A program made the translations under genes and the position numbers. A DNA stretch of 64,000 nt, taken from the NCBI GenBank assembly GCA_044892505.1, contig CM097882.1:196540001-196604000 (forward strand). Reading direction: 5' to 3'. Positions 3,887-62,100 of this stretch are shown here, piece after piece; the first letter of the stretch is position 1; each line of letters opens with the position of its first letter. This DNA comes from Schmidtea nova. Taxonomy: Eukaryota. Under the pieces are notes generated by a model. It was not told the origin of the DNA. It saw nothing but the letters and a program-made list of their open reading frames with translations, and ran no database searches.

Positions 3887-4156
3887 NNNNNNNNNNNNNN
3901 NNNNNNNNNNNNNNNNNNNNNNNNNNNNNNNNNNNNNNNNNNNNNNNNNNNNNNNNNNNNNNNNNNNNNNNNNNNNNNNNNNNNNNNNNNNNNNNNNNNN
4001 NNNNNNNNNNNNNNNNNNNNNNNNNNNNNNNNNNNNNNNNNNNNNNNNNNNNNNNNNNNNNNNNNNNNNNNNNNNNNNNNNNNNNNNNNNNNNNNNNNNN
4101 NNNNNNNNNNNNNNNNNNNNNNNNNNNNNNNNNNNNNNNNNNNNNNNNNNNNNNNN
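3887..4156. other. Assembly gap (N run)
   Basis: Run of N. Confidence 1.
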
Positions 4157-24000: not shown

Positions 24001-27000
24001 TTTTGTAATTTATCTGATTGCATTGTAAATTGATTAAAAACTGTTTTTCGAATAAAATTGGATTGGAAAATTTAATAAATTAAATGTCTTCGAATTCGAG
24101 AGTTTTTGATCGTTATATGACTATTTATTCAGCCGAAGGCAGATTATTTCAGGTCGAATATGCATTTAAAGCGATTGCGTTAGATGGATTACTTTCTGTT
24201 GGTGTTCGAGATAATGATTGTGGCGTAGTTGGTACACAAAGAAAAGTCCCAGATAAAATGAATGAAAAGAGTTCAGCTACAAGATTATTTAACATAACTG
24301 AAAGTACCGGTTGCGTTAGGACTGGAATGATTCCTGATTGCGGATCGGAAGTATGCCGTGCACAAATGGAAGCTGCACGATTTAAATGCAAAATTGGTTA
24401 CGAAATGTCCTGTGACATGATTTGTCGATGTATTGCCGATATTAATCAATTGTACACTCAATCAGCTGCAAAGATGCCATAAGGCTGTTCAATGATCGCA
24501 TTTTCTTATGATAAGGAGATGGATAAGCCACTGTTATTCAAAACCGATCCAAGTGGATTTGTAGCTGGTCGTCGAGCTGTTGCGGTCGGTGGAAAACAGT
24601 TGGAAGCTAAAAGCTATGGGGAAAAGAAGCTTCGTAAAAATTCAGAATTTTCAAAAAGAGAGGAGATCAATCGGAGCTGGACGCGGCGAACCATACGTAA
24701 ATAAATTTATTTCAAAATATAACATTTGTGGTATGTTGTTTGTTTTAGCGCATTCTGTGGAATAATATGTTAAATTATAATTTCTCTACTGTTTATTTCA
24801 ACCTTCAGTCGGTGCATTTGGGGTCGACTGGACCCCGGTCATTGTAATGTGCGACTCAATAAGTTTTACACCAAATAAATATGCCAGGCCACTAGAGTTG
24901 CCTCAACTATAGTATTACACACGCATTACTGAAAGGGATATCGAAAAAACATTATAAATTCTTACAAAATATATGAAAATATACATAGGGTAAGATTGAC
25001 CCCTTTGCACAGACCATAGAAAATTTACTGTGCACAGACTGAAGGTTAAATAAAAGATTTTATTTCAGCTTAGGTGACTATCGAATGTGTATTGTGATTT
25101 TAATTGTATTATTCTGTTCATCATTTATATAATTTATATAAATAACTACAATTGAACTAATAAAGATTGTAAAAAATTGTCACTAATCCATGGTCGGACA
25201 TCCTAATGCAGATACATAGGACCTTTACAATCATGATTAATGAAAATGCGATGAAACATCTATGCGGCTTGGAGGCTGATCATAAGGTCCTGGTGGGATC
25301 GAATTTTTACAAGGAACAGATGAAAGCCAAATAAGTTCGATGAAGAAACAACGAGTATTTTATGATCAATTTGCTCGTGATTGTTACTAATCACTTATAT
25401 TTCCCTATCATATAGTCAGCTCCGTATGTACAAATACCAGAATCTTGATCTCAGATAACATTTGTTATTTGAATAGATTTTTTATAAAACTTTCTTCAGC
25501 AGTAATGTAGGTTGCTGATTTCAGAAATGCTCTTCTTGTATATTTTGTAATTCGAAATCTATAAATCTTAAGGACATTTATAATATAGCTTCATTTGTTA
25601 TATTCGTTGATCCGTAGAGTTTTAACACATTACAGGAATTCATGAAATGTTCGCACTAGTTGATGTTTTATATCATCAGAAAGGGAACTTATTTGTCAAC
25701 TTACGGTATCGATATACATTAATATTTTGTTTATTCTCGTTACATGTTCTGAACCGAACAGTTCACTGCAATTATCTTCCAAATGATGCTTAAATAAAGT
25801 TTCCCGAATAACCCTTTCCTTCTTAGCAATAAGTTAAGCAGTAAAAAGGAGCTTTCTAAACACGTTTTGTCTAATAAAACAAATTTTATCAGATCGGAAG
25901 CTTTAAATTCGTTTTACTTTCTTTTAAAAAAGTCCGCCGGATTATTATTTATATTGAATATGATTGGTTTCTAAAAGACTTCATAATTGTGGTAGATCTG
26001 TTCTATATCCTGTTTTACACATAAATCCGTAATTTATAAATTTGTCAAAGATAAAGGAGACTATTAGTAGTTGTATATTCGACTTTTTTGCGTAGGTTTC
26101 CTTTTACCATTCGATGTACTTGGTTCTACGATTTCTGTACGATGCAATCGCACAACTACAGATTAAGTAAATAAGATCTTATTTAAGGATAACAAAATTG
26201 TCGAGCTTGATAAGCATGAAAACGACATGTTAAAAGGCAATAGGATATTTTAAATTAGTTTTATTAATTAATATGGAAGATTGGGAAAACAATTGATACT
26301 TCTCGCAAATGGATATGATTAATATTGGGCTAGCCTATATAAACGGAGATAAAATTGTCTACATTTGATATAATTTTCGGTAATGAAATTTGTCAAAAGT
26401 GATTTACAACGAGAGTTGAGAGATTTCAGTGACATATTGCTTATCCCACTTGAAAATCTTTTTTTATTGTGAAATAAGTACTTTTATTAATTAACTAACA
26501 GTATTAAAAATTAATTGAAATTCATTGTTTGATTTTCTAAAATTATCAAAGTATATAATTTAATCGCGTATTTTTGATTTTATCTATAAATTTTGGCAGA
26601 AAAGGCGTGCAAATTAATTTACTAGTGTTGGAAACGTCAGACAACCACAAAAAGATCTCAGACACTGAGTGATGGACTTGTCAGTCTACAAGTGTATTTT
26701 TCGGGCTTCCCTGATAAGTAGCCCTCAAATTTTATTTAAGAAAATTTCTGCTCCGAGGTTGCAGGGAAGGTCATTTTGGACGAGCCACGCCTGGGGACGA
26801 CGATTTATCTCCGTCACTTTTCTTATATTTTATCGTTATTGTAGCCAGTAATGGATTTCTAAATTTCAGGTTCAGGAATATTGGGATCGTAAAGGATTTC
26901 AAGAACAAGGGGAACATAAGGGACATAGGGTAAACTGTAGGTTTGAAGAGCACCGGGAACATTAGGAGCATTCAGGACATCAGGAGCGTAAAAGGCTTCA

Positions 27001-30000: not shown

Positions 30001-33000
30001 AAGATTATGTTTTAAATGTTAGCACCAAATCGTGTTTTAAAAAGTTTTTAATTTTTTAAAATATTAAAACGTAATATATGTTTAGTCATAATTCTCTATC
30101 CCTTTCTAGAATTTCATTGGATGATAAAAATAAATTTCCTACCCTTACTCGATTCTGTTTCACTAATAAAAATAAATTTTCTTCCCTTTACTCGACTTTA
30201 ATTGGTCAGAAGTTATATTGTAGTGCAAGCCATTTTATAAATAATTAAATTCTGCCTATCCATTGTTACACTGAAAACCCGATCGGTTAATCGAGTCGAA
30301 AAAAGGTATTTGAAGATTTGTAGTAGGGGGTTATGAGTGGTCTGAACATCCTAGATATGTGAATTCGTATATTTTCAATTAAATTAAAAATAAAATTCGT
30401 ATATATTTTTACTCTCTCTATATTAACTTCGCGTTTGATTGATTGTGCTACGCCAATTTTGCGACGGCAAATTAACCAACTTCCTATGATAGGATCAAGC
30501 TAGAATTTGTCAAGTAGATTCGATGTCGAGAACACTACATGTTATTAAAATTTCAGATTGATCCAATCACGGAAAGTGGGTTAATTAAAAAATGTTGATA
30601 TGTCAAATCTAGTGTTATTTCCTTATTTCAATATAAATTCTTATTTATTTATTGACTTAACTTATATCTAAAATATGTTATATAAGTTTGAATAAATATT
30701 TCATAGCTTTGAAAACGCATATTGAAATTACAGTTTTGATAAAAATTAAGATAGTGAAATATAGAGAGTTTTAAAAACAATTTCAGTTAATTTAAATAAA
30801 AAATCATTTTTTAAACACGAAAAAAATTAATTTTAACAAAGATAAGTAATTATATAATCATATATAATTACACAATCACATGATTACATAAGTATATTTA
30901 GTTACGTAACAATGACATCATTATATATTATATACAAAACCCGGTCAGTTATGTAATACACACACGTGGAAGTGGTTTTTGACTTGACATAGTCTCCTAC
31001 TATAATAATATCCAATATTGAGTATTATTTATTTCATTTATGAATATCTTTAATCTTTGTGTTCCATCCTTGAAAAGATAACCCTTTAACCCTTTCTAAG
31101 GAGAAGGAAACTAAAAGTGATGTAGGTCACACACACTTGTCTGTCAGCTGTCAATAAATATAGCGGGAAAACACATCTATAGTTTCAAATACTATAAATT
31201 TGCTCTCTTGTGGCTCAATATATGTCAGTAGTTGTACCAAAAGTAAAAATGATTACCGACAGCGTTACATTTAGATATTTTTATTAGTTTAAAATGGTGT
31301 ACAGTATATTGCCCCCACCTTAGAAAGGGTTAAAAGATAAAAATAACTAAAGGCATAAATTTCATTGCAAAATTATTTGTCACTTAGTTGCAGCATATTT
31401 AATAGGGAGTATTTAATTTTAAAAATAAATTTAAAAAATAAAAATGTTTTTATATTTTTCTAGACTATAGATAAAAAACAATTTTGATTTATAGGCTTTA
31501 TATGAAAAAAGAAAAATTTTGAAATAGAAAAATACTTCAAAGGTGAAAATAATTAAAACGTAATTGATAAAAAACACATTGATCCATAATTTTAAAAGTA
31601 CTAAAAATAACGGAAATTAAAATTGAAAATGTTGAAAAAGAGAAAGGATCTGACTGAGATTTTACCAGTTTAAAATTTGTATTTTAAAATTGTTTCTAGA
31701 ACCGTTGATAAATTTATATTTAATAATTAATATAATCCTGAACATAATCATAAATATAAAACTTCATAAATTACCTTCATAATATAAAGGATGAAGACCT
31801 CTCCAAAGATGACACTGTCTACAAGTGATTTTTTCTCTAGTTACAACCAAAATAGGGCATTTAGGGCGATGTCTTGACATTAACTGAGCTGACCTAAATA
31901 AATTTATAAAACAATTCCTAAATAAATAAATTACATACCTGCCAGATGTAGTAACAACTATAATACATCCAGCTAAACTCATTGAAGCTGCTTCAACGGC
32001 AGCAATGGCCACAGAATGGGTAACGTCAATAGGAAGTGTTAAACCATATTTTAAATCTTTTTGCAATTCATCATGAAATGTAACAGCTTCAGCTTCACGG
32101 CAGATCTGATGCATCGTCATCACAGCTTCTAAAGGATATAAACCTTTGGCCGTTTCACCTAGTAATTATAAAATATATTAAGACTTAAATATCTTTTGTC
32201 GATTTGAGAACTTGATACAAAAAATGTCAGATGGAATATCGTTACAATTATTAATTTCAGAGTTCAACAGGTTTGGGCGCAATCGTTCAACAACTCATCG
32301 TCAAAATAGAAGGCTTTGTATTTTACAGTGAACTAATCCAACAGCGTTCTCTCGACAAATCACTCAACAGTTTAATAAACAGTGAAGAATGAGCATTGCG
32401 CCGAGCACAATTAGAACACGCATGCTTTCATAGGGATCGAGGAGTAGATATGCTTAAAAAAAGATTATATAAGTAATTTATAGGAAGAAATACCTGCAAT
32501 TTTCCCAATGCCATCATCGCTGGACAATGCACAATGGCACAAAGTAATTTTCTCTGATGAAGTATCTGTTTCTCCTGTTCAATATTCAAAATGACGTCTT
32601 GTCAAATATTACACAAGTGAAATTTTTTAACTACAAGCAACAGATAAGCAATTAAGTCAGATAGCGGTAAATGAATATGCTGGGGTTACTTTTAAACAAA
32701 AGAGTTGATTCTTTAGTGGAAATATCAAGAAGAATAATAGATGTTCCATCCGCAGATTTGCCCAATACTAATCATTATTTGGACGAATACATACAAAAAT
32801 AAAATTTCCCAGAAAAATGCTCCTATCAACAAATCATTTGTTGTAATTAACCAGTTACAAGAAAAAATGTCGGATTTATAGAATAAACCCCCCCCTCCAG
32901 TCTCCGGATCTCAATCCTACCGAGAATGTGTAAGTTGCATTAACGAAACAATTAGATAAAGCTTAGAAAAATAACCCTAAAAATAATGCTTCGCTAACAA

Positions 33001-35078: not shown

Positions 35079-37914
35079 TATTTTCTTGTTCCAATGATTT
35101 TCTTTTTCTCGTGTTCAAAAATATTTTTTTTTCTCAAATGTCCAGGTCAAAAATTTTTTAAAGGTGGTAACACTGATTGTTATCAATGAAAAATACGTGT
35201 CAATACGGCGAGTTGTACCAATGCGGTCCTCCGTTAAAAGAGTTTGTCCAGCTTTGTTCTAGTTCTTATTTTAAATTATTATGTATTTGTTAAGTTTTTA
35301 GCATGTAGAGCTTTTCTTCGTCACACTGCTTATGAATTTCATGCACTTCATATTGCAACCAATTTAATATTTTTTTTCTATAGAAACATGTAAAACTCAA
35401 ATTTAATTTGAGTCGTATTTTTCTGTAACCTATTAATATAATCACGGTCTTTGGTATATTCATAATATTTGAAACTCTTAAGAATTGGAACTTGATTCAT
35501 ATCAAGTACAATAATAAACATTTACACAAAGTCATTAATTAATTTATTAAAAACCTATTGTATATATTCAAAGAATTAATAAGCTGGTTAATTCTAAAAA
35601 TTAAATAAATAATTAATTTTTAATATTATTTCTTAGAAATAAAAACATTTAAAAATCTAAAAAAGCAACCTGAGAGCATGACACAGTCAGCACCATCTAA
35701 TACTGCATTGGCAACATCACTAGCTTCAGCTCTAGTCGGTCTGGGTTTATAAATCATTGATTCCAACATCTGCGTTGCACATATCACAGGCTTTCCGACT
35801 TTATTGCACTTTCCTATCATCATTTTTTGAGCAATAAATACTTTTTCAGTTGGAATTTCTATTCCTAGATCACCACGGGCCACAAGTATTCCGTCACAAG
35901 CAGCCAATATTTCATCAAATCTATTATTCAAAATTTAATTGAGTTTATATTAAAATATTAAATAAAGATCAAAATAAATATTTTTGGCAAAAAAGCTTGA
36001 CAAATGGTGTGATAATTATAAATAATATTTACTAAGATGATAAAAATCAAGAGAAAATTTAACAGGTGCTTAAAAGAAAACGAAAAATACTAATCAAACT
36101 CAGGAATTTAAAAACTTGGGAAATTAAAAATAGATAATGGTCCAAAGATTCAAACATTATTTTTAGGGAAATGTTTTTATTTATTATTATTTGTTTTAAG
36201 ATAGACACAAGTTTTCTGGTTGTTTAAATGTATGGAAAATAAACATGTTTTGGTGTTTCGGTAGTTTATCCAATGAGTAGTCTGCATGTGTTTTGATTGG
36301 ATTGTATTTATCGTCTGTCTAGGTAGGATGGAGGAAATCTTTATGACTTTCTCGCTCACGATTATGCACCCGAGGATATCCCTAGCACCTCCCTTTTAGA
36401 ACTGTGCATATCGACGTAAGCTGAGCAGTATGTGAGCGTCGAGGTTCGTGACTACTGCCTGCTTGCTCATAATCGGGTTCCTTGACCGATAGAAGGTCTT
36501 ACTGTACTTTGCTGGTCTCTTGTGGTCACGCTCATACTACTATATTCACTCTCATAACTATTATACACGTCGGCGACGACTCGGAGAAAATAGAATTAAC
36601 ACGTGTAACCTTTTATTATTGAAACTATAATTTCTGTGACATCAAAACGGGATGATTTCATTGAGCAGTTCGGACTTGGGTAAAGTGTTCCGTGCGTCCA
36701 CTTGAGCTTCTAATTGTCTTTTGAACGCCTTCTTTTATCTGCGTCGTTTTGATCCGATTTGTTTTCGTTTCGTGCACGAGGCACTTGCGAGTCCGACAAT
36801 AGTGTCAGGGGTGGACGGCGGATGATTTTCGAGTTACTCCACTGTATCAGTCCAATGTTGATAGGTAATGGGTCTTAGCTCCTTTTCTATAAATGACTTG
36901 GTTACCTGGTTGAGGCAATTTCTCAACTCCAGTTTAACGGCGTCGAGTACTGTCTGCACTACAACTGTGGCGCGCTGGGTCCCCTCAGTGCGTTGGAGTT
37001 CTTCGCGCATCTGGTTAGCCGAGAAGTATCGCCTTTCAAACTCGAAGTTTTGTGCACTCAAGCGGGAGATTTTAAACTTTAGTTGGTCAATTTCGATGTT
37101 CTTCTTTGCAAGATATTTCTTTTAACATCTACGCTTCTCTCTGGTTATAGAAACGAACTGGATATCCATTTTCTAACGGAATATTATCATCACAACGGTG
37201 GAACTGGACGTGAGTTAATTCTGATATGGTAATGATTAAAAACTATTTCCATGAGATCTTTATTTCTCCTTAAGTTAGTAATACTTTCCACTCTCAGGGA
37301 TTTAATAAAAAATACAAACACATAAGTAAGACAACAAGGGAAAAATATCCTTTATTACAATGACACGGCAAATATAAGTGATATCTCCTAATCCACATTC
37401 AAAGTGGAGAGGAATACAAATATCCGATGAATGTTCAACCCTCGCCTTATCGTTGCCTGACTGAGGGAGTTGATCGACTGGCTTTGATTGATCTGGTGGT
37501 TCTGTATCTTTGATACCACGCGCGAAGGACGAGGAGGAGTTAACAGAAAAAACCTAATTCATTGAAGTTTTCCTTCGGGATGTATCCCCAATAGAAGAGT
37601 TTATGCGGCCGTCACGATCTGTCTCGAGTTACCACGAACCAGGACTATCTATTCTCGACATCAATAGTCCACCGGGGTCCTCTTCTGTTACATATCTCTT
37701 CCTTTGACCGCATCTCCAAGATAGAAAAAGGGCAACGTGTTTTTAGCTCCCTCCTACATGTCTTCGCCCTGGCATTTACCATTCGACTGATGATGGGCGG
37801 AAGGTTTTTTAACGGGTCAAGCACCCTACGACGTTAGGCCTCAACCTTCTGTTTGGACCTCCATCGGGGGCATTCTCCTCCCGCTCCCACTGCATTTCTT
37901 TTAGATTCTCGTAA

Positions 37915-37974
<60 letters not shown>

Positions 37975-40900
37975 ACACTAACTTGAACAAGAGGAACCGA
38001 CGATGAGCCACCACAAGTCGTTTCAACTGCCGTTTTGTACGTTTGCTCAGAAGTTTAGGACGGCGTGAACGTGGCTTGTTAACATGTGTCTGCTCTTGGC
38101 TTTACTTCCTCAGGAAGTAGTTAATAGTTCCTTTGGGATGACCAGTCAATGCACAAGTTTCACTCTGACTTTTCCCACAAAGGTAACATACGTAAATAAT
38201 GCCTCTGAAAGTCTGTATGCTCTCTCCGAGTAGCCATATTCTAAGAAAATGACAATTCTTCATTAACATGACTCATTGTTATCACTGTTGTGTGTCTTGT
38301 GTGAGTAGTCATATTCTGTGTGTGTCTGTGTGTGAGTGCGTGCGTGTGTACATGTGCGCATGCAGCATGCTGAAGGTGTTGGTGACCTTTGTTCCTATTG
38401 CAGTTCATATTTGAAATGTAGAAGTTCATTATAAACTGCAATATGTAAATAACTGCCTGACTTGAGACTTTTGGTATGTCGGGATATATTGTATTTAAAA
38501 ATTATAAGTTAAAAATGATTTTTATGTAAAATATAAATTATCTTTAAAACTCACTTTCCTGAACTTATAATAAAAATATAATAAATTAAAAAATAGCTTT
38601 ATGTAATAGCTTTATATGGACAAGTCTGTAACACGGGCAGCGAAAATGTGCATTCAATTGCATACTACTATTTATTAATTTATCTTCTGTATAATAATTT
38701 GCTAACTACTATAAATTATATAATTTATATCTATCATTTTTTGCTTCACGGACGTTAACAAATTGTTATATATGCATAGCTTTATAGAAAATTATTATAT
38801 TATATTAATATTATTATTTATTTATTATTATTATTATTTATTATTATTATTATTATTAGTGTCAATTTTATTATCGTTTCAAAAATTTTATTGATACAAT
38901 TTCTCAACTGAATAATACTGAAATGATGAGTAAAATGCTATGTGAATATAATACTTTACGGTTTTATGACTAATTAAGTATCTGCTAAGAATACCGTGAA
39001 ATATGAATATAAATTGACGTAAAAAATTATAATATGTAGTCTAACAAAAAATTAATTAATCATGGAAGATGATATAGTGACGAAAATCTTTAAAGCAGTA
39101 GATAAAAACAAGAATGGAGAAATTTCTCAAGACGAATTGAAAGAATATTTTAAGAAAACGAAAATGGCTGACTGTGACATTGAGAAACGAATAACTGATT
39201 GGATGTCAAAATTTGATACCGATTCAAACAAATCAATCAGCTATAGTGAAATGTGCAAGGTAGTTGGTATCCCAGAAAACCAAAATACAAAATCAATGTT
39301 CAAAAAATAATGTAATATTAGTTTTGATCTAAAACTCATTATTATCTTTTAGTAAAGTTTTAATAAATCTTTTATAGTAATTTTTATTTTATTTGTAATT
39401 TATTGCTCAATTTTATAATTGTCAAATTTAATTGAATTTGTAGAATAATTTTTTTAAAACAAAGGATATTGAAAATTTTTTATTAAATATGAAAATTTAT
39501 TAACTCTTATTTTTACTGTTGATCTTTTAGTTTAGATTTCACGATTATTCAATTTTTAAAGATAAGATCAAATTTGAGTAGCTTAAAATCCTAAGAAAAA
39601 GTTATTTTTTATGAAAAATCTGGGTGAGTGTTATGCACGTGGGATATATATGAAAAATTTTAAAAATAGAATCAAAATTAACACAGATATTCCTTAAACA
39701 TGTATTTAATTTTTAATGAATATCTTTTTTAGTTTCAATATGAAGAGAATCTAAAAAATAGACTAAAAGATTAATGGTAGCTAATCTTGCGTGATTTTTG
39801 CATTTATATTTTCTTCTACAGTTGATTCAAAATAGAGATTTCAATTATTTCATCGTCATTGCTCATAATTTTAAGGCAACTTGTTGTTACTAAAGACCAA
39901 GCTTCAACAATACACTCACAAATAACAGAAAATAATGTTTTCCGAATTTTACCAGCACTAATGAATGTATGCTAGTCTTCAATCCTCATATGACCTTTAT
40001 ATGTTCTTTATATGACCTTTAGAACTTTTATTAACCAATGTGTCCAAAAGCTTTATTTTTTTAGCAAGACTTTCTGGTAATGCAGCAACTTGAGAATATT
40101 TTGATGTGTTTGACTTTACCGAAGGAGTTTAGTAAAATGGAGCTGAATGAAAAATATTTATTTTATTGGTTTTGGCTAGATAAAGTTAAAACTTAGAAAT
40201 TAAATTTTAAAACATTTTTATTAACCTTTTCGCGCCGAAGACCGTATATTCCCGCGAAAGGAAAAACGTGACAAGTATTCGAAGACCGTATTTATCTGAT
40301 TTCATTATATTTAAGGGACGAATGTCGGACTCTTCCATTTTTTGTGTTAGATGTTTATTTGTGTTTATAGGCAAGTTTAAACTTGTCTGTTATTTAATTT
40401 GTCATGTATGAATCCGTCAGTAGTAGTTCTTACTTCATAGTGGGCGTGCATATACAGTGAGCCATGGCTAACTATATGAAACATACCCGTGTCACCCCTT
40501 CCTGTACCACCCTTACAAGTATACTAAAACCCAACCGACCAAAGCTGTCTACGACAACCCGACAAAAAAGAATCTACTTGGATTATATCGATTTTATATA
40601 TATTATATAGAGCTAAGTCAGAATGACTCAACAAGTTAAGAGAGTTAAGTAAAAATGACTTAACTTTATATATAAAGTTTTAGATAACTCAAGTAATTAT
40701 TATAGAAAAATAAAATCAATAAATATTAATGATATTTAATGAATTAAAATTAACAACTCGAATCAGGTAAAATTAACATTTCGACAATTAACAAAAACAA
40801 ATCAAGATGATGTCATTTCAAAATTGTGTATCACATACACCTACGAATAGTCTATTAACTCGTCCACAGTGTCGGCAGGTGACGGAGGTAAATGATCGGT

Positions 40901-43900
40901 TTGCTCTTGTTCTATGTATGACCGATACATCTGACTCGTATTCACATATGGATTCTCTATCACCTAAAAAATAACATAATAAAATTTTAATATAATATAT
41001 ACTTCGGTTTCTTTAATGTGTTCTTTATATAGTTTGCCAGTAAAATGGTGAATGATGATACGCCTATTAATTGCCTTTTGTATCTCAGGGCCAATGTTGT
41101 CGGGAAAGAAGTTTTCCAAAGTATTTATGCAGAATATTCTCGGTATGCATTTCGGTATTATGGCGACGGAATATTTTATATTAATACAGTTTTCAAATGC
41201 AAGATCGACAATACTTAAAAACTCTGACGAGTTAAGCTTGTTAAAATATAGGTCGTCAAAGACAATGCCATCGGATTTCGTGATGTCGCTAGAAACTCTT
41301 CCTAGCATCTGCATATGTTTGACATGTACCGGGCATTTAAAATGGCTTAGAGCAAAGTTGGTTTTGCCGATGCCAGTTTCACCAAGGAATATATGGCTAC
41401 GCATATCATGAACGTCAACTGCAGGCTCAACAAAATCCACAAAATTGGACATCGTAGGCTTACCGTACTCATTCAGCAAGCTCTCAACAATAACTTTTCG
41501 TTTAGTTAAATAATGGAAAGGTTCTTTTTCTTTAATATGCTGTAATGCCTCGGTGTTTGAGTTGAATTGCAAACAAGCTTTAAAATTATTTTCAAAAGTA
41601 CGCTTACTCTGCTCTCCATATACGATTGATATCCCATTGGGCCTCCTTGTCTCGAGTTTGGTGGCGTATTGGTATACCGATGCGCGCTCAGTAGCCGGAT
41701 GCCCTTTTTTTGTATTGGGCTCGGACAGCGCTGATTGTGTAATTTCTGCTAGTCTCGAGCATGCACTGCAGATGTTTGAAAACGTTATCGCCAACCTCTT
41801 CCTGCGCAACAAAGAACTTTGTAAGAGCAGCATCGTTCCATAGTGCGCGTAATTCGTCTTCATGCTGTTTGAAATATTGCATGCTGATATTGAATGACCA
41901 TATGTAGAATCGCTTTCTAAACACATTATCGTTCTTATGGTTTGTTGAATTTCCCATGGCGGCAGCAGAGTCGCGATTAATCGTTGCCACCATTGAGCTA
42001 GTTTCCAGGTCTCTATATCGTGCAATATTTGCCCGAACTTCATCGAATGAAGACGATGCAGTGCGCTGCGGAGACTGACGCATACCGTGCACCTGTCCTG
42101 ATGGCACATCGAAAGATGACGACTGTCCGGGTTGAATGCCATCTTCACCTCGTACGCGTTTACACCGGATCGGTGGATGGTCCCGCAAGTCGTTTATTAG
42201 TGTGTTTAGCAGCTAGATAAATGATGAGATATGGTACTATAAAAAATTAAATTACTTGTATTTCGTACCATCTTACATTTCTTTGTGCTCGGCTTATACA
42301 TGGTGCTTCTTCGTTATCGTCAATTGCAGTGATGAACTTTGAAACCTCAAAAACTGTCTGTCTTATAGGCATATTTAATAGCACAAAATAGCACAAAATA
42401 GCACAAAATAGCACAAAATAGTACAAATAGTACAAAATAGTACAAATAGTACAAAATAGTATAAATAGTATAAATAGTACAAAATAGCACAAAATAGTAC
42501 AAAATAGCACGTCACGAAAAGGTTAAAGTACATGTTATACAAAGAAAGTTGATTTAAAAATATACAGTTGCATGTTATACACAGGATTTTAGGGTACTCT
42601 GAAAAAAAACTTGTGAACTATAGTCTTTAAAATAAAATTATTAAAAATTTTTTTAATTTTACCTGATAATTCCTTCGTGACTTTCGATTTTCGCAATAAT
42701 TTTCATATGTTTACCCTTTTCTCCAAGAATAGCACGAATTTCATCAATAGCCGACCCACTTCTGATGAAGCTTGCAAACACCATGTCTAGCTAGATCAAT
42801 TTTATTTTATATTAATATAATGTTGTTATAACTTCTTGTTCTGCTGCAAATATTAAATCTTGTTTATCTTTCTCAGAAACAGCTGGTAAATCAACATTTT
42901 GACCTGGCATATTTATGCCTTTTTTAGAACCCAAAGTTCCTCCATTTTCGATTAAACATTTTATTTCATTTGCTCCTATAAAAATGTCGAAAATTAAATA
43001 ATCTTTTAACAATTTAAACCTAAAATTTCCATTTATCAAAATTAAAAATTTTAATAACAGAAAATATTACAAGATGGAAGTTTAACTTTAACATTTTCAA
43101 ACAGATCAACGGGGTATTAAAGAAGTCAAAAGATTTTAACGATAAACAGAATTTATTTTATTAAAAATTGAATTAATTCATTGAAAAATTATAATTTAGA
43201 GCGCATATATAGTTGGACCGTGCAACTATTTATAATGAAATAATTTGATATCGAAAAATTGCACTCACTTTGGGTTGAAGTTGGCTTGATAATAGACAAA
43301 ATAATAATTAACTGTTGTCAGTAATTGTTAATTGGCGACTCCCTGGAATAGATCGTTATCTGGCTGAGGTTTGCATTCTTTTATACAATCTGTAAATGAC
43401 AATTTCAACTATTGTGAAAAAAACAATTCTTCAGTTTTTTTTGAACTATTGACTCAATATTTCTTGCAGTTTTAAAATATCGAATATTGTCGACACATTC
43501 AAAAAAATATTCTTTTCTTGATAGCACAAAACATAAGAATTATTAAGAAATTTATTTATGGAAACTAAAGATTTTTTTCCGCTTTTAACCTTGCTAAGGC
43601 CATGTGGGGTAATTGTGTACCCCAGCATCATATTTTTTTGAAAATTTCTGTTAAATCTAGAAACTACCGCATTCACTCTTGAGTTATTCCAAGTGTGATC
43701 ATTTAATATCACTTTGCATCAATTTCATCACAAAAAAAAGAATCCTATTCGCATTTATTGGGATTATATGATAGTCTTAGAACCAACATGAAACAGTTTT
43801 ATCCGACTAGCACATTAAGATAAACTACCTATAGCTGCTTTTGGTACAAGTGATAGTTATTCACTCTGTACTCATAAACAAGATCGCAAATGTCGAAAAA

Positions 43901-45683
43901 TATTTAATAAATGTCCAGCATTTGTGTGTACAGAACATTCAACTAGCATTATAATATGTAAAACTTGTGATAAGTAATATGTTACTACATGTAAGAATAT
44001 AAGGTAATGTCCATTTTGTAAACACTTTTTTTCTGAAATATATTTGTATTTCATAGAAAATATTTTATTTTATACGTTAAAATTATGCGTTAAATCCTTT
44101 AAATTAGCAATAGAACAGTGAAAAAGTATTGGGGCACAAATTTACCTTAAATGGTCTTCCGTGTAAGAAATTCGTGCCGGCCTTGAGAAGGTTAAGCAAA
44201 CTCTTATTTAATTGCATTGACTAATTCAAATCAGATGGATAAATTTATGAAAGCAGTTTTTAATTATTAATATTAAAATGAGTCTAAGCTCCATCACTGT
44301 ACCATATGGCTGTTCTCTATTAAAAGAATGTTCACCCACGCGTGACCTATCACAAGATAGAATAGGCTTATTGTCATTCAGGGCAAAAATTATCCTCGTG
44401 TCAACTGATGAACGACGATATGTTAACAAAATTAAATAAATAATAAAGTGTCATTTACCAAGACATGTTTTCTTACTGCCACTCACCGTTGCATTCAGAT
44501 TGAGACCACTGGTAAAGAGCGCAATAATAATTTCCCGCCCGTGTAAATTATTTATTAAAGTCATGTCAATTTAATTCACAACTTTTATATAACGAACGTT
44601 TTCGTCAAAACCAGTTAAAAAGTTAAAAATAGAATTTTCTGAAAGAAAATGACGAGATTACCGTATTTTTTGTCGTATAAGTCGCTACTTTTTTTCGTTA
44701 AAAATACAAGTGCGACTAATATAAAGAAGCGACTTATATGATAATTTTTATTTTTTTTCTAACCAAACCAACAAATGTCCAGCCAAATTTCCAGAAGAAA
44801 TAACAAATAATGATTTTTTAGAAAAAATCGAAAAATTAGGTTGGTGTGACTAATACCCAGGAAAGTACGGTAAGTGTATTTCAGTCGTTTGAGAAAATCC
44901 CCATCTATAGCTGGTATATCAGTATTTTAAATTTGATATTGTACAAAATTCATTTATTCAACAGAATAACATTTTAATAAACCTATGCTTTTCACGACTA
45001 AACTAATTAGTCCGTCATCTATGTAAATTTTTTTATCCATTTTCGCTACTTTCATTATGTTAGTATAATCCACATATAAAGTATTTTCATCAGAATCTTC
45101 TTTATATTTTTCATCTGTTGTCAATGTTATGAAATTTCCCGATTTTAAAACTACTTCAGCAGTGCCACTCTAATCATTAATTAATTATTTAAATTCATAT
45201 TGGTAACTATTTACCCCTTTTATTAAACCTGTTCTAATTTCAGGGCCTTTTGTATCTAACGCAATTGAAACTGGGCGGTAAACATTCCCAAAAGACATAG
45301 TTACTTGACGAACAGTATCAATTGTTTCTTTATGATATTCATAACTTCCATGAGAAAAGTTCAGTCTAGCAATATTCATTCCTGCATTTATCATATTTTT
45401 AATCATTTCATGTGATTTTGAAGCAGGACCTATTTAATTCAAATGTTTAAGTGTTAAAATTATTATAAAGTTAATTATCCACCTAATGTACACACAATTC
45501 CTGTATTTCTGGCGTATGCAGGCTCACTGTAAACATCCAACAAGCACATGTGCTCCAATGTAGACCTGGCGGCTTCTATTTTAACTTGCTGCCGTTGAAC
45601 AAAATAACTAGTTTCTTGAAAATTTGAAGCTAAAATTATTTCATTAATTTTATTTACAGAATTTCAAAATTCTAACTAGTCAT
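20852..45683 (-). CDS. PK: Pyruvate kinase, 10 exons, 540 aa
   Basis: Exons 45683-45677, 45629-45483, 45429-45215, 45169-44983, 42975-42833, 42790-42663, 35920-35670, 32158-31939, 31893-31775, 21057-20852. All introns GT..AG and phases consistent (1623 nt). Motifs [69 protein letters not shown]. Confidence 0.95.
21720..22720 (+). mobile_element. pogo/Tigger (CENP-B-like) transposon remnant
   Basis: Degraded [21 protein letters not shown] (cf. LLLLDNAPGH..FLPPNTTSLIQPMDQ). Confidence 0.55.
23419..23840 (+). pseudogene. UGGT: UDP-glucose:glycoprotein glucosyltransferase N-terminal fragment with a frameshift near 23660
   Basis: Signal peptide, then [28 protein letters not shown]; next frame [25 protein letters not shown]. 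Similarity stops after about 140 codons. Confidence 0.75.
24084..24704 (+). pseudogene. PSMA6: 20S proteasome alpha-1 subunit (PSMA6-like) intronless pseudogene
   Basis: [42 protein letters not shown]. Premature TAA at 24480-24482 (MP*GC vs MRPLGC) and a divergent, truncated C-terminus. Confidence 0.85.
24802..25045. mobile_element. piggyBac-type MITE
   Basis: TIR CCTTCAGTC(G/T)GTGCA; TTAA on the right, TCAA on the left. Confidence 0.7.
26880..27240. repeat. Degenerate ~9-nt tandem repeat (GGAACATCG / GGACATCAG)
   Basis: Recurrent GG(A)ACAT motif giving PMF-like periodic ORFs. Confidence 0.5.
31090..31329. mobile_element. piggyBac-type MITE
   Basis: Perfect 12-nt TIR CCCTTTCTAAGG with TTAA at 31086-31089 and 31330-31333. 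Confidence 0.8.
31775..32158 (-). CDS. PK: Pyruvate kinase exons 8-9 (45-nt intron 31894-31938)
   Basis: [19 protein letters not shown]|[20 protein letters not shown]. Confidence 0.92.
32200..33110 (+). mobile_element. Tc1-like transposase remnant
   Basis: [34 protein letters not shown] motifs in broken frames. Confidence 0.75.
35670..35920 (-). CDS. PK: Pyruvate kinase exon 7
   Basis: [32 protein letters not shown]. Confidence 0.95.
36170..37915 (-). mobile_element. Unclassified GC-richer insertion with a broken coiled-coil ORF (~37169-36650); possible retroelement 5' remnant
   Basis: Composition shift; frameshifted [11 protein letters not shown]../[31 protein letters not shown]..; ends in a (TA)n tract. 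Confidence 0.3.
37917..37972. repeat. (TA)n microsatellite
   Basis: Direct observation. Confidence 0.95.
39062..39310 (+). CDS. Small two-EF-hand calcium-binding protein, nested antisense in PK intron 6
   Basis: EF loops [12 protein letters not shown] and [12 protein letters not shown]; intact 82-aa intronless ORF. Confidence 0.85.
   Translation: MEDDIVTKIFKAVDKNKNGEISQDELKEYFKKTKMADCDIEKRITDWMSKFDTDSNKSISYSEMCKVVGIPENQNTKSMFKK
40841..42372 (-). CDS. rep: CRESS-DNA-virus-like Rep (HUH endonuclease + SF3 helicase); 3 exons (42372-42256, 42212-41003, 40963-40841); one +1 frameshift at the A7 run 41705-41711; ~482 aa if corrected
   Basis: RCR motif I-like FYIWSFNI, motif II KHLQCML, motif III YQYATK. 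Walker A GETGIGKT, Walker B IVFDD, motif C IFCIN. Introns 42213-42255 (43 nt) and 40964-41002 (39 nt) are GT..AG and phase 0. Confidence 0.85.
42377..42510. repeat. 14-copy tandem array of (A)AAATAG(C/T)A(C/T)
   Basis: Counted directly; lies between the right TIR and the Rep ATG. Confidence 0.95.
42663..42975 (-). CDS. PK: Pyruvate kinase exons 5-6 (42-nt intron 42791-42832)
   Basis: [24 protein letters not shown]..|[20 protein letters not shown]. Confidence 0.92.
43480..44191 (+). mobile_element. piggyBac 3' remnant
   Basis: C-terminal [27 protein letters not shown]; right end CCTTGAGAAGG followed by TTAA. Confidence 0.6.
44661..44870. mobile_element. pogo/Tigger-type MITE
   Basis: TA-flanked CCGTATTTT..AAAGTACGG ends; subterminal CGTATAAGTCGC / GCGACTTATA. 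Confidence 0.55.
44983..45683 (-). CDS. PK: Pyruvate kinase exons 1-4
   Basis: 7-nt first coding exon ATGACTA; 47, 53 and 45-nt introns; [38 protein letters not shown]. Confidence 0.88.
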
Positions 45684-47330: not shown

Positions 47331-48400
47331 CACCGTATTTCAATAGCGTTTCTCATCTATAATAATCAGTAAACTTATAATATAGAAAAATACACACCTA
47401 CTTGTACCTTATCCATTGCTGTTTAACTGAATCGTATCATTTATTATGTCGTAGGCAAAGAAATAGAAAAATAAATTTCACAAACACAAAATATAGAAAT
47501 AAACAAATATAAACTTTCAGATGCGTTTTTTGCTTCATTTTATAATAACACAAAAAATTTTAATCATCAGAAAAATCATAAATTTAAATTAAATTTAAAA
47601 ATTTTTTAAATAAATCTGAGAAATCTACCTTGGTTTTTCGTGAAAAGGATGAAATATCATCGTAAGTAATGTAATTTAAGTTAGAATAAATTTATATTTT
47701 CCCAGAATTTTCATTCAAGAATTAACTTCCGAATTGGATGGTACAGGATATCATTTAATACATGATAATGCTTTGATTCATGGTGGAGCAATATCCAAAA
47801 ACAATTCCGTTGATAATCTACCACCATATAGCCCTTTTCTTAACCCCATTGAAAATGTATTTAGCAAAATCAAATGTAGTTTACGGAAGACTTTCTCACG
47901 ATCAAATGGCTTCTCAACAATGTCTTTCCAAGACAGATTTTGCTTGGTGAAAAATGCTCTTGAGGAGGAATTAAATAAGGATGACTAAAAAGATTAAGAA
48001 ATTTTTTTCATTCATATTTGCAAATTTTTTTCAAAATGTTTTCAAAAAATTGAAATCTTTTGAGATTAATGTATTTAATATATAAATTTTAGTTAAAAAT
48101 GTTTTTTTACGTACCTTTGATGTGAATAATTCCAAAAAAATCATAATAAATTAACTAAAAATCATTCAAAATTAAATTTAGTTAAATTTGTTTATAATAG
48201 ACAACCTTTTAAAGCTTTTAAAATGATCTCATGTCATTATGATATCAAAATAAAAGCCTTAATAGTTATTCTAATAAATAAAATTACGTGGAAGACATTT
48301 TAAAATGGCTAATCCAAAGAATATTTTAAAAATGAATAATAACCCTGTACGCATTTCACTCACGTGTATTATAGGTGAGAAACGCCATTGAAACACGGTG
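47331..48400 (+). mobile_element. IS630/Tc1-like internally deleted element
   Basis: ~34-nt TIRs CACCGT(A/G)TTTCAAT(A/G)GCGTTTCTCA(T/C)CTATAATA with TA flanks. ORF 47734-47988 has HDNALIH..LPPYSPFLNPIENVFSKIK. Confidence 0.88.
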
Positions 48401-51886: not shown

Positions 51887-54800
51887 TGTGAGATAATAAG
51901 ATAATTCAAAAATATTTATTCATTCAATAAATTTACTTATTTGAACAACTTTCTTTTCTTTTAAAAATCATTATTTTTAATTATTCTTCTTTATACATCT
52001 CCCCGAGATTCTGACAAATCTTCATTCCTGTGCCTCAAATCGGTCAGGACGCGGCATTGCCACGGTTCCGTAATCGACGATTGCTTTATGGGGAGACAGT
52101 AGCTTCATGATTCTTCCTCTCATCCAGGAAGATGTACATGGTTGATTTTGCGCGGGTTTCACCCACACCTTGTCGTTAATCTGAAAGCCATTGTCTATTT
52201 GTTGAGCCGTTCTTTTCGTTTCATTAAATCGATGTCTTAAGTCATAAGCGTAAATGCCTTTTATCGGGGGTCTGAAAGAACCATTTACTGGTATATTATT
52301 GTACCAGTAAATTGCTTCTTGCACATAGCATTCCGATTGCATGACTGCAGCTTTTATTGTTTTATGGTTCCACTTAATAATGCCGTTGCCTGCTGGTCTA
52401 TTAGTGGATCTGAATTCAGTTCTAATTTTTCACTTTTTCATTAGAGAAGTGAAAGTTTCTGACCTAAACGATAAGTAATTGTCCAACAGAAGCTCGTCAG
52501 GAGGTCCTCTTTCATAAAATACCTGTTCCAACTGTTTGCGAACGCCGTGTTACACGTATGTTTCATAATCCAATTTGAGGGAATTTTGGTTAATATGTCG
52601 GATTTATTTTTGTCTGTTGGAACGTATTCTATTTCAACCTTTATCTCATATTCAATAATTAGTTCTTTAATAACTTATTTACTAACTTATTTACTAAATT
52701 CTTATTTACTAACATTTCTGAGGAAGCTTTAGTTGAAACCTTTCTCTCGGATGTCAAGGCATTATGCACCCAACTTACCACGGATTTGTTATTCGACATG
52801 ATTTTTACTGTCTTTAAAATCCATTTGATGCATAAATTGATGCCTTTAACGATCGCCTCAAGTTCGCACAGGTTAATGTGCCTAACGTCATTCTCCTTTC
52901 TCAACCAGCATGCGTCTTCCACGATATTTCCGTCGATTTCTAGTGCTGCTCTTATGGCGATAGAGCTTGCATCACACCATAAAATGTTTCCTCTGTCCAT
53001 TGGTGTTTTCCATATACCATGAGCCGGATTATTCTTTTCAACCTCCTTAATTAACCATTTAACTTTGTATAGGTTTTGTACGCCGATTGGCCGGTCCCAT
53101 TCTCCTTCGCTTAATCGTTTGAGATAAGAGCACGCGGGTCGTAACCAACCTGCAACTGGAAGAATTCCGGTTAATTGACCGCATAATTAATACAGTTCTC
53201 GTCTATGTATTATTTTATTGTTTTATTCTGTCATTTAAACCCTACACGTAATTAACGATCTCTGTCATAATACCGGGAGCGATATTGATTCCGAAGCCTA
53301 GTCTCATCAATGTATATCGCCTTCCGTTTACAATGCATGACTGGTACTTCCACATACTCTCATCAACCCGGATTTGCATGTACGCATCAGATAAATCCAA
53401 AATCGCTATTTTCTTTCCTTTCTTTCTCCAATCTTTTATTGTTTCATTGCAAACTACTGCTTCTCCACTGTAGACGTCTAAATAATGATTTAAAGCTCTA
53501 AAATCGAACACTGGCCGTATTTTGCTCTTGTTCTTTTGCATAACCGGAAATAAAGTTACTGCTCTGACAGGCTTACCGAACCGGTTTTCGTCATATTCGA
53601 CTAACTATCCATTTTTGATCACTGCTCGATGACTTTGAGTGCTTGGCCTGCTTTGGGCTTATCTGGATCTAACTTGGAATATCGATCTGACATAGATACT
53701 GAGGGTTCTGTGTTCCAATTCCATGATACCATCCATTCTTTGTTGAACTTTGCTTCGAAGTTCATCCTTTGAATTAAAAAACTCTGAGCTTCGTTTCCGT
53801 TTACAACCCTCAAACATTTCAATTCACATCCGAATCTGACGTTTTCACTAATTGTCACTCCTCCTAGTGCTATAATGGCGTTCATACCTAATATGACTTC
53901 ATATCCCGCTATCATTTTTATAGAAATGTAACAGTCAATTATAAAGTACTTTCCTTCTAATTCGATTTCTGCCTTGTTCTGGCTCACCGGCAGTATCAAT
54001 CCATCTGCTAAAAACACGAGCGTTGGGTGACGTGATGGCTTCTCCGCGTATAATTGTTGTCGAGCATCCGGAATCTATAAGACATAGCCGTTTTGATCCA
54101 TTTATAGAAAGAAGTCTTTCTTTTAACATCTTTTTGGGATCGAGAGAGACTCTTGAATATTCTTGATCCCTTTGTCCTTTCCCGATTTACAATATTTGGA
54201 TTGGTGTCCGAGCATTTCACACCTAGAACATTGAATTTTTTCTTGTTCAGACAGTTACTGGCAAAATGGTTTTCATTACAAATATAACATTGCACCTTCT
54301 TTATCTTCATTGCAAAGGCAGACTGATGTCCATGAGCTAGATTCAGTCGTCAAGCGATGTCACCAATTGCGTCGACCGTCGTTGATCCTTGACATCTCAC
54401 CTCAGCTGCGATTTCTACTGGCAAGGAGTTGATTACAATGTTTATTGATAGATCTCCAGCGTTAAAAGCCAGATTCTTCATTTTTGATAAATGAATGTTA
54501 ATATTGTCCCCGATCTGGAATGTCTACTTGCTTCTGGGGGATCGCTGAAAGCTCGTATCAATGATATTTTAATTTCTTCATAACTAATATCTTCGTTTTC
54601 GCTGCTTCCTTCAAAGTGATAAATTCCTTCCCCTTCATGACAGCAGGTAAAATTTCTTTTTTTTCCATTGAACTTGTGAAGCTTGCATATTAATTCAAAC
54701 TTATCGAACCATTTATCGATTTTCATGTTTTCATCGTCAAAACATTCTATTGCACTCAATATATCTTTTATCATGCCCGGATAGCTTGTGAGATAATAGG

Positions 54801-59195: not shown

Positions 59196-62100
59196 TGTGA
59201 TAAAAAATGTTTGAAATAAAGCTCGATTCAGCGTTTATTCTTTATTACAAGATTCTTTTTCAAATTCTGTTTCTCTTTGAAAATCACTCGATATAAACAA
59301 ATCTATTTTCTTTTAAATTGATTATCTAAAATAAATTAATTATCACATTCCCCCGTGATCAGTACGACGAATCCAACTCGTACTGATCAAGATAGGAAGG
59401 CTTCCTTCGGTTGCGAGCCAAGCGCGTGTCTTCCTCACTCTCTTCTGGATTTCTGATGTCAACCTGATTGTCTTCAAATTCGCATTCGACATCGCTGGAT
59501 TTGATAGATTGATTTGGCAACACTCGGATGTCTGCAACATGACGCGGTACACCGTCAACCTCTACGTTGGTAGGTGAATTAATGCCAGTGATGATTCCAC
59601 TGGACCACTGATCAGTGCATTTGGTCGGAACTGGCTTTATAACAACATTCTGACCAGTTTTAAATTTACTAGATACTACGCGCTCCTCCTCGACATCTCT
59701 GTGAAATTTCCATTGGTACTTAAATAGCCCCTCTGATGGAGCTGTACTCTGATTCTTCGCGTCTTTGGGTGCCATGTTATACCAATAAACAATGTCCCGT
59801 TGGTCTGAACGACTCCTGGCTGCATGGGATTTTATTGTCCGGTGGTTTCTCTCCACGATACCATTCCCAGATGGACGGTAGGCACATATGTATGTCGGCT
59901 TTACATCCCATCTACAACATAAATCTTGTAAAGATTTAGAATGAAAACTAGGCCCATTGTCCATGAGTAGCTCACGAGGCGGACCTCTCTCTCGAAACAC
60001 TTCTTCGAGATTTTTCACAATATTTTGTGCATCTTCATTTGGTATCCTTCTCCAAATTGCAAATCTGCTAGGCCCACAATCAACGATAGTCAAGAAAATG
60101 GATCCTTCGTAGTGCGTTACATCTACAGCTAGTCTTTCCCAATTTTTATCGAACCCTAATGATTCATTTTACCACTTAAATGGCGACGGATCGATAGATT
60201 TACATTCAATACAATTTCTTACCACATTTTTATGAGGTCTCGTGGGGTTTCTGGGTTTTCTAACTGAATGAAATAAATAGATTTTTCCAGACCAAAATGG
60301 TTTTTGTTGTGACGGTTTCTTACTTGTTCTGACGATAAGCCCACGCAGCCAAAGGATGCTCTAGACTTCAACCACCTCTTTGGAATGCGTGTCAGTATAT
60401 CTGCTCGGTTTTCCGCTGATTTAACCAATTGCACCTGAATAAGAATTCTGTCATTCTTGATAATCTCTTTTATTATTCCCAAGCGACGTCTTATCAGAGT
60501 CTCTGAAATTCCATGGACACGAATCTTACATTCATTGTTAAGAACTGTTCTCAACCAGCCTACTACCGTCGCCGAATCCACCATCAGCTCGATTTTTTAA
60601 CGCCCCATTTGATTGCTAAGTTTACGCCTTTAAGAACTGCATCGAACTCAGCGACGTTTGTATGTGAATGATCATCACTTTTCCTGAGTCAAGTTGTATC
60701 CTCCACGACGTGGCCATTTATCACTAATACGACACCCAGTGCTAAACTGCTAGCATCACACCATAAAGAACAGTGATCCCTGATGTTTACAGTCCAGCTT
60801 CCTTTGACTGGATCGTCCATTTCAATGAGACTCGTCACTTCAGTCAATCTCGATTCGCACTCTGTTCCGACGAGATCATCCCAATTTGTACCATCCGCAA
60901 TTCTCTTGATAAAACTGCAAGCCACTCTGAGTCACCCCGCGACCGGATAATGCCCAATAAGCTTTCCACAAATAGAAAACAATTTACGCCGAGTAACTTT
61001 ACCTTCAATTGGGTCAACTATATTTCCTCTTGACCATAACAGGTTACCGTGACGATTGCGTTCAATTTTTAAACCGAGAACCTTTGTATCCACTAACAGT
61101 TCCACTGGCTTCGTTACTAATCTATATTGAGCCAAATGTTTCACCACTTCATCGATACTGACCAAACTCGTGTTAACAGCTATGTCATCGATGTAATGAT
61201 CTGTCGCATTCAGGATTCGCGAATCGAGACTCAGCACCTTTCTCAACATTGAGGACATTATCTTTGGAGCACAACTAAGACCAAATCCTAGTCTTGTAGG
61301 ATAATACGTCTTCTTTTTGTAGCGAATCCTTTGGAATTCCCAAAGATCTTTGCTTACATGCAACTGCAGATAAGCATTTCTTAGATCAAGCATCGATAGC
61401 TGTTCTCCCATCTGTCTCCATCGTTTTAGGCTCTCACCACAAACATCACTATCGCCAGTGTGACTCTTCACAAATTCATTGAGTTCCCTAAAGTCAAGAA
61501 CGAGTCGAACTTTTCCTTTGTTTTCTTGTATTGCAGAATTCCGCAGCCGGTTTCTTCAGCGAGGGTTAGCCAGCTTTCCATTATCCATCGCTCTACTTCA
61601 ACTTCATATTCTTGTCGCACTTCAGGCTTAATTGCGTATTCGGCAACGTTGTTCCGCAAGTCTTTCCATTTCCAAGATATTGTCCACTTGTCTCCGTCAA
61701 AACTTGCAGCGAAATCCTCATCGTCGATCTTCACTTGTTCTTGAACTAAAACCCGCATGAATACTCAAGTCCATTCACCAAACTGTACTCCATAATTGTC
61801 AATTGAGACTCCTCCAAGGCGTTCAATCGCATCGAGACCTAAAGTAACATCCACTCTGGTTACAAGATTCGACATTATTAAGCAATTTAACAAAAAACTT
61901 GTTCCTCGAACAGATAAATGACACTGACTCTCCTTCACAGTGGACTCTTCTACCATCTACTGCAACAACAACTCTGGCTTCACAACTTCCTTCTGCACAG
62001 ATACGGGAAACAATGGTTTGCGAACATCCAGAATCGACTAGTCCAGTGCACAATTTTCCATTCACTCTGAGTCTGACAAGTACTCGCGCAATACCTGACA

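Follow-up and report, generated by a model that had tools for sequence, protein, structure and literature searches.

A predicted CRESS-type Rep gene between piggyBac-type ends in a pyruvate kinase intron

[quoted passage not shown] The unit lies on contig CM097882.1 of GenBank assembly GCA_044892505.1, within a stretch of 64,000 nucleotides (positions 196,540,001 to 196,604,000 of the forward strand) that we refer to as the window, and all coordinates below are counted from its first letter. A preliminary description of the window, made without database searches, had singled out this unit as a candidate hybrid mobile element.

The unit and its host gene

The unit lies in an intron of a metazoan-type pyruvate kinase (PK) gene on the minus strand. 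The intron extends from approximately 35930 to 42659, as judged from PK exon frames on both of its sides, and one exon product matches PKM structures with an E value of 4e-28. Between the two TTAAs, the unit covers positions 40225-42522, that is, 2298 bp, and the bracket that includes the TTAAs covers 40221-42526. At the left boundary, TTAA is followed by CCTTTTCG and then by roughly 2.3 kb of interior, and at the right boundary CGAAAAGG is followed by TTAA. The two TTAAs (40221-40224 and 42523-42526) read as copies of a target-site duplication (TSD), and the 12-mer TTAACCTTTTCG has exactly two perfect matches in the window, at 40221-40232 on the plus strand and at 42515-42526 on the minus strand, which are the two boundaries in inverted orientation. 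Comparing 13 nt at each end gives terminal inverted repeats (TIRs) at 40225-40237 (plus) and 42510-42522 (minus) that start with CCTT and are identical at 11 of 13 positions, and neither end has an alternative partner within 6 kb. The published rule for piggyBac ends is a TIR of 12-19 bp that begins with CCYT, next to a TTAA target (PMC10175614), and the unit, with its 13-nt CCTT TIRs and its TTAAs, satisfies it. The outline given in the preliminary description, a TTAA-bounded unit of 2298 bp with inverted ends, inserted in a PK intron, is therefore borne out by these comparisons.

With blastn, neither the whole unit nor its ends, middle or flanks turned up a second time in the window, and tblastn with 152 relatives gave no Rep homology in the window outside the unit. 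Outside the window, a 20-mer of the left end has no match in viral contigs; its six matches in a metagenome collection all lie in GC-rich bacterial contigs without TTAA, and we dismissed them as chance. The same large intron holds, on the plus strand and hence opposite to PK, an 82-aa open reading frame (ORF) with an EF-hand pair (39056-39307, Pfam E value of 2e-13). This ORF, which may be a nested gene or a retrocopy, lies 0.9 kb from the unit, and an exact look-up of it returned no other contig on record.

Enrichment of piggyBac-type ends

The window is AT-rich (G+C of about 30%) and contains 856 TTAAs, so that inverted pairs beside two of them call for a chance expectation. There are 20 perfect 8-nt inverted pairs next to TTAAs at most 6 kb apart, AT-only ones being common, and two of the 20 start with CC: a 248-bp miniature inverted-repeat transposable element (MITE) at 31086-31333 and the Rep unit. 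When the 64-kb window is shuffled in blocks, a CC-starting perfect 8-nt pair flanked by TTAA appears 0.02 times per window. Under a looser rule, which takes TTAA, CC and an identity of 10/13 or more, three pairs are present in the real window, at 31086-31333 (12/13), 40221-42526 (11/13) and 43585-44195 (10/13), compared to 0.1 pairs per window in 300 shuffles, none of which reached two pairs or more. Ends of the piggyBac type are therefore truly enriched in the window beyond chance, and one of the pairs tightly encloses the Rep.

The two other pairs correspond to independent elements. The first (31086-31333) is a textbook miniature element whose TIR starts CCCTTTCT, and the second (43585-44195) is a MITE-like unit of 611 bp in the preceding PK intron whose TIR starts with CCTT. 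The preliminary description had mentioned other piggyBac MITEs in the window, and the comparison with shuffled windows agrees for these two. The two elements and the Rep unit have in common only the first few bases after TTAA, and the three therefore represent different families.

The Rep gene

Rep is the only recognisable gene of the unit. It is encoded on the minus strand, the same strand as its host PK gene, by two overlapping ORFs with outer bounds at 40964-42188, and combines a predicted HUH endonuclease, with an HUQ version of the motif, with a superfamily 3 (SF3) helicase. The tblastn homology to Rep relatives has outer bounds at 40985-41918. The five Rep motifs named in the preliminary description are all found in the minus-strand translations, spread over two reading frames, and the homologous parts are broken by one frameshift, with neither a further premature stop nor a sizeable insertion or deletion. 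The coding sequence is thus interrupted once in about 400 codons.

We treated the two frame pieces separately throughout. For the helicase-side piece, an exhaustive search of 1.84 billion cluster representatives, which stand for about 15 billion proteins, returned 1032 relatives at an E value of at most 0.001, with a best E value of 6e-47 and with the closest relatives 39-45% identical. No protein among these representatives exceeds 45% identity to the piece. This is a mild argument against a multi-copy family in whichever genomes are well sampled, a negative limited by the possibility that the host genome may be missing from the collection. For the endonuclease-side piece, the matches are to the N-termini of those relatives (P0017 with an E value of 5e-12, and also P0007, P0025 and P0005). 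A word-indexed protein search with the Rep returned only one distant virus; the relatives emerged in the exhaustive search. In Pfam, the best match is a sub-threshold one to Gemini_AL1_M, with an E value of 0.006.

The alignments with these relatives place each motif. In motif II, H-L-Q aligns with the H-x-Q/H/E of nine relatives, and the conserved upstream glutamate is present; in motif III, YATK aligns with YCTK in the Rep of the planarian extrachromosomal virus-like element (PEVE), which gives the single catalytic tyrosine; and the Walker A, Walker B and motif C of the SF3 helicase, with IFCIN among them, all align with those of the relatives. A profile built from the endonuclease-side alignment matches solved Rep endonuclease domains (6h8o, 2hwt, 7kii, 7lar and 8fr5). 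Placed on a family profile of 358 positions that was built from 20 relatives, one piece spans positions 6-72 and the other 81-312. Judged by motifs and homology, the gene of the unit is a CRESS-type Rep, with a predicted HUH Y1 endonuclease and an SF3 helicase, and is nearly full length. What the preliminary description had called a HUH/SF3 Rep is indeed one, down to all five motifs, with the amendment that it occupies two frames and is broken by one frameshift, which that description did not mention.

An intron as the cause of the frame change was considered and rejected: the relatives are continuous across the corresponding region, and no shared intron therefore accounts for it. Introns at the two ends of the gene are a separate matter. 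A candidate 5' exon at 42277-42372 (minus), read from the sequence and not from a prediction tool, would consist of an ATG and 32 codons; the GT...AG stretch after it, 64 nt long, reaches as far as the first codon of the open frame. A candidate 3' exon at 40841-40963 (minus), which has no homology support, would add 40 open codons after a GT...AG stretch of about 40 nt. The contig of one relative, L003, has a short ATG exon and a short AT-rich GT...AG stretch upstream of its Rep, akin to the candidate 5' exon. Short, AT-rich, GT...AG-like stretches also occur inside or upstream of the Rep in L002 (approximately 1058-1104), where the stretch is read through in frame, and in L003 (1739-1875 and approximately 2300-2340), where the ORF is split. 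Together, these stretches in L002 and L003 suggest that spliced Rep genes may exist in the clade.

Relatives of the Rep

We looked up the contigs that encode its six closest proteins (P0002, P0003, P0004, P0005, P0007 and P0009), which are found on seven contigs (L002-L008). All seven are short and AT-rich (28-37% G+C), and in each the Rep is accompanied by a second gene, 220-250 aa in length, for an SF3 helicase of the PPV_E1_C/Parvo_NS1 type. The second helicases are mutually related and adjoin the Rep except in L007, where an ORF of 366 aa, the third of that contig, lies between the two. L007 has a terminal overlap of 30 nt and is therefore a circle of 3.19 kb; just upstream of its Rep, a perfect palindrome of 35 nt stands in place of the canonical nonanucleotide stem-loop. 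The origin of this lineage may accordingly be non-canonical. A more distant match, L001, is an ordinary circular genome of 2.57 kb with Rep and capsid genes.

The closest named relative is the Rep of PEVE (P0014), with 34% identity over 217 residues of the helicase-side piece (E value of 8e-29 in the library search and 4e-42 in the pairwise comparison), and the cluster of P0006 includes the Rep of a bird-associated CRESS-DNA virus. The Rep of the unit clusters with PEVE and with unnamed relatives, and its top matches all combine Rep with a second helicase. By this homology, it is a predicted member of a PEVE-like clade of small circular DNA elements. The pairing of Rep with a second SF3 helicase gene seems to be little described apart from PEVE.

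We found no counterpart of these extra genes around the Rep. Using tblastn with the second helicases of five relatives, no such gene was found in the unit or in the window, the only hit being a P-loop word in an unrelated ATPase, and the proteins of the relatives' extra genes (second helicase and third ORF) match nothing in the window. Conversely, none of the eight contigs of relatives (L001-L008), most of which are incomplete, has TTAACC...GGTTAA ends.

Interior of the unit

Outside the Rep, the unit is asymmetric, as the preliminary description had noted of its subterminal repeats. Next to the left TIR, the region 40236-40291 (plus) contains two exact 12-nt direct repeats (40236-40247 and 40280-40291, from a blastn self-comparison) and also a short copy of the terminal motif, internal and inverted. 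Next to the right TIR, between the Rep start and the right end, lies a tandem array of 13.5 copies of a 10-nt unit (42377-42510, Tandem Repeats Finder score of 185-191). No such array is found upstream of the Rep in relatives L002, L003, L004, L007 and L008. We therefore rejected the idea that the array represents viral iterons; because the relatives have no counterpart, it looks more like the subterminal structure of a transposon or a local expansion.

Between the left subterminal region and the candidate 3' exon, roughly 550 bp (40292-40840) are without a recognisable gene and include an imperfect palindrome at 40604-40672 (29-nt arms, 76% complementary). No open frame in this segment matches a Pfam family, and the segment has no similarity to the second helicase, third ORF or DNA of the relatives. 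Nor do the other open frames of at least 40 aa in the unit have a significant Pfam family. The only Pfam similarity among its open frames is Rep-related, with no DDD transposase, and neither the open-frame scan nor tblastn found a capsid-like or other further gene, which agrees with the absence of both capsid and DDD transposase stated in the preliminary description. On both strands of the unit, there is no NANTATTAC-type nonanucleotide in a stem-loop. The unit is linear and integrated and has neither the circle nor the capsid gene nor the nonanucleotide stem-loop of a CRESS-DNA virus genome. A scan for bacterial-type promoters and terminators gave matches no more frequent than in shuffles. 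A 15-nt stretch of the interior (40762-40776) has an exact inverted match outside the unit, at the end of a PK exon and its splice donor (42653-42667), which is probably due to chance (blastn E value of approximately 0.1-0.3).

Comparison with known elements

Endogenous CRESS Reps are well documented in animals (Liu et al. 2011, PMC3198968), and PIVE, the integrated relatives of PEVE, have been annotated in a planarian genome (PMC3198968). The unit resembles such endogenous Reps as a Rep-only, slightly degraded copy in non-coding host DNA, and copies of this kind also occur inside transposons or genes, but no bracket of duplicated TTAAs and inverted ends of the piggyBac type was described around their Reps (PMC3198968). 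With PEVE and PIVE in particular, it shares the Rep lineage, and the second helicase of its closer relatives is of the Parvo_NS1/PPV_E1_C type reported for both, whereas the unit itself has Rep only, without second helicase or third ORF, between piggyBac-type ends with TTAA; this comparison covers Rep and gene content, the ends of PEVE and PIVE lying outside it.

The preliminary description missed two precedents for a composite anatomy, along with PIVE and PEVE (PMC3198968). The geminivirus-like transposon of Tuber melanosporum (PMC3198968) likewise has a Rep-like ORF between TIRs together with a simple-repeat array. However, its TIRs are 37 bp long, it lacks a TSD, and it encodes two transposase ORFs and exists in 42 near-identical copies. 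In the unit, by contrast, TIRs of 13 nt adjoin a TTAA TSD, a transposase is lacking, one copy is visible, and the Rep is of a different lineage, in an animal host. Teratorn, a fusion of a piggyBac transposon and a herpesvirus in medaka (PMC10175614), shares with the unit the CCYT TIR and TTAA around virus-derived genes. Whereas Teratorn is about 180 kb long, is multi-copy, comprises a whole double-stranded DNA virus genome and encodes its own active piggyBac transposase, with activity shown (PMC10175614), the unit is 2.3 kb long, has one gene of the single-stranded DNA virus type and no transposase, and is known here from its sequence alone.

Helitrons and Replitrons are, like the unit, eukaryotic genomic elements that encode an HUH Rep (PMC10288648). 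In Helitrons, a Y2 Rep is joined to a helicase of the SF1B (Pif1-like) type, and TIRs and a TSD or TTAA are lacking (PMC10288648), whereas the unit has a Y1-type Rep, an SF3 helicase, TIRs and TTAA, and so is not a Helitron. In Replitrons, no helicase is fused to the Rep, and the termini bear short direct repeats (PMC10288648), whereas the unit has an SF3 helicase and inverted termini, and so is not a Replitron either. The contrasts with both groups drawn in the preliminary description are correct by the same source (PMC10288648). In a literature search, non-exhaustive and without Repbase, we came across no description of a CRESS-type Rep enclosed by ends of the piggyBac type.

Origin of the unit

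We favour, with a probability of about 0.6, the reading that the 2298-bp unit is a non-autonomous piggyBac-type insertion that carries an endogenised viral Rep as a passenger. This corresponds to the first of two alternatives in the preliminary description, a non-autonomous piggyBac with the Rep of a single-stranded DNA virus, and it fits the TTAAs, the CCYT-type TIRs, the nearby MITEs, the Rep as sole gene and the lack of a transposase. A piggyBac-superfamily transposase encoded elsewhere would act in trans, recognising the ends and cutting and pasting the unit at TTAA, and the Rep would be the passenger and not the engine, with no part in the movement. The passenger status is suggested by the single frameshift, the lack of a recognisable origin, the absence of the other two genes of the lineage and of any further Pfam family, and the tandem array, which looks transposon-like and not viral. 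Such a composite could have arisen in two ways, either from a viral DNA fragment that integrated into a resident piggyBac-type element or from transposon ends that recombined with viral DNA when the two were present in the nucleus together. The unit is then an unusual and probably inert passenger, not demonstrated to be a new kind of mobile element, and the term 'hybrid mobile element' describes its anatomy and not a shown life cycle.

Several points weigh against this reading. The perfect stretch of the TIR is only 8 nt long, and no piggyBac transposase is encoded in the window. We also know of no piggyBac transposase with ends that match the unit. Only a single copy is visible in the window and in the searched collections, so that the unit may never have transposed as a whole, and we could trace no origin for the inner 550 bp or so or for the tandem array. 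In addition, an error of the assembly may account for the one frameshift; the Rep would then be intact, and the term 'inert passenger' too strong.

The simplest alternative is a plain endogenous viral element, that is, a PEVE-like fragment that integrated without transposition and whose TTAAs and CC-starting inverted ends are coincidental in an AT-rich genome. The abundance of TTAA, the short perfect match of the ends and the single copy in the window all agree with it, and CRESS-derived elements of animal genomes usually take the form of integrated fragments with Rep alone (PMC3198968). We nevertheless consider it unlikely: CC-starting TTAA pairs occur at 0.02-0.1 per shuffled window and the pair brackets the Rep tightly, which puts such a coincidence at roughly a few per thousand, and the ends obey the CCYT rule in the company of two independent elements of the same type within 12 kb.

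A bolder account would have some members of the PEVE-like Rep circles of invertebrates bear piggyBac-type ends and enter chromosomes as TTAA-flanked units through a borrowed host piggyBac transposase; the copy described here would have been inactivated recently, and the lineage would be a miniature, single-stranded DNA virus counterpart of Teratorn. We regard this account as rather improbable.

A true hybrid resembling Teratorn, in which piggyBac-type ends are the normal means by which a Rep replicon enters the chromosome, perhaps with episomal amplification by rolling circle, is improbable to a slightly greater degree. Fusions of piggyBac and virus do exist (PMC10175614), as does a Rep-bearing TIR transposon in Tuber (PMC3198968), and the Rep of the unit starts near its right end and is almost intact, with its one break in about 400 codons. 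Yet the unit lacks an origin-like stem-loop or nonanucleotide, its Rep is frameshifted and no second copy is seen; the seven contigs of relatives are without such ends, the one complete relative being an ordinary circle, and the search of the 1.84 billion representatives returned nothing above 45% identity. For these same reasons, the second alternative of the preliminary description, a Rep-driven rolling-circle element with piggyBac ends, finds no positive support, so that the interpretation given there is supported in part, for the passenger and not for the hybrid.

Equally doubtful is a Rep that was exapted and kept by the host, in which case the frameshift would be an assembly error, the gene would have acquired or kept spliceosomal introns and it would be expressed. 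The frames are open over the whole homologous length except for the one break, plausible GT...AG stretches lie at both ends of the gene, with a similar 5' layout in L003, and some endogenous Rep genes are conserved and expressed (PMC3198968). The position inside an intron of another gene, between transposon ends, speaks against such a role, as do the introns, which no tool predicts, and the exhaustive protein search, which returned no orthologue or close paralogue that would show purifying selection.

Finally, an assembly chimera or contaminant, with viral reads misjoined into a host intron, is very improbable: nothing positive speaks for it beyond two N gaps elsewhere in the window, whereas both junctions are clean, with the duplicated TTAA and inverted ends, which are not what a misjoin would leave behind. 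The PK exons go on to either side of the unit, and its base composition and intron-like stretches are host-like.

If the bracket is a true transposon boundary, a gene of a small circular DNA virus can be carried, and possibly spread, in an animal genome by a cut-and-paste transposon and not by its own Rep, and the few virus-transposon composites on record would be joined by one from a small virus. Whatever the nature of the bracket, the Rep ties to an animal genome an otherwise host-less clade with Rep and second helicase, represented mostly by anonymous short contigs and with planarian PEVE as its sole named anchor so far, which is useful for host assignment. Should the unit be a lone, decayed copy, it would join the other endogenous Reps, at an unusual address.

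Other features of the window

The window is rich in transposons. At its left end, a cluster of intron-less ORFs (62-2914, perhaps extending to approximately 5500) encodes an rve integrase core with a chromodomain on the minus strand, a packaging ATPase similar to poxvirus A32 and a TBP-like protein, and resembles a Maverick/Polinton-like or other integrated double-stranded DNA virus-like element that is unrelated to the Rep unit; an N gap spans 3887-4156. To the right of the unit lie a fragment of a Tc1/mariner-type DDE_3 transposase (47680-47985, plus) and remnants of long terminal repeat retrotransposon pol genes on the minus strand (52659-53000 and 59359-62288), with protease, RVT_1, RNase H-like and rve domains. 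Scans with Rfam and for tRNAs had no hits, and neither did a protein search with a host ORF of 251 aa. The host genes include, both on the plus strand, an ORF for a PAC1-like proteasome assembly chaperone (7531-8286) and an exon of a proteasome alpha-subunit (24084-24482).

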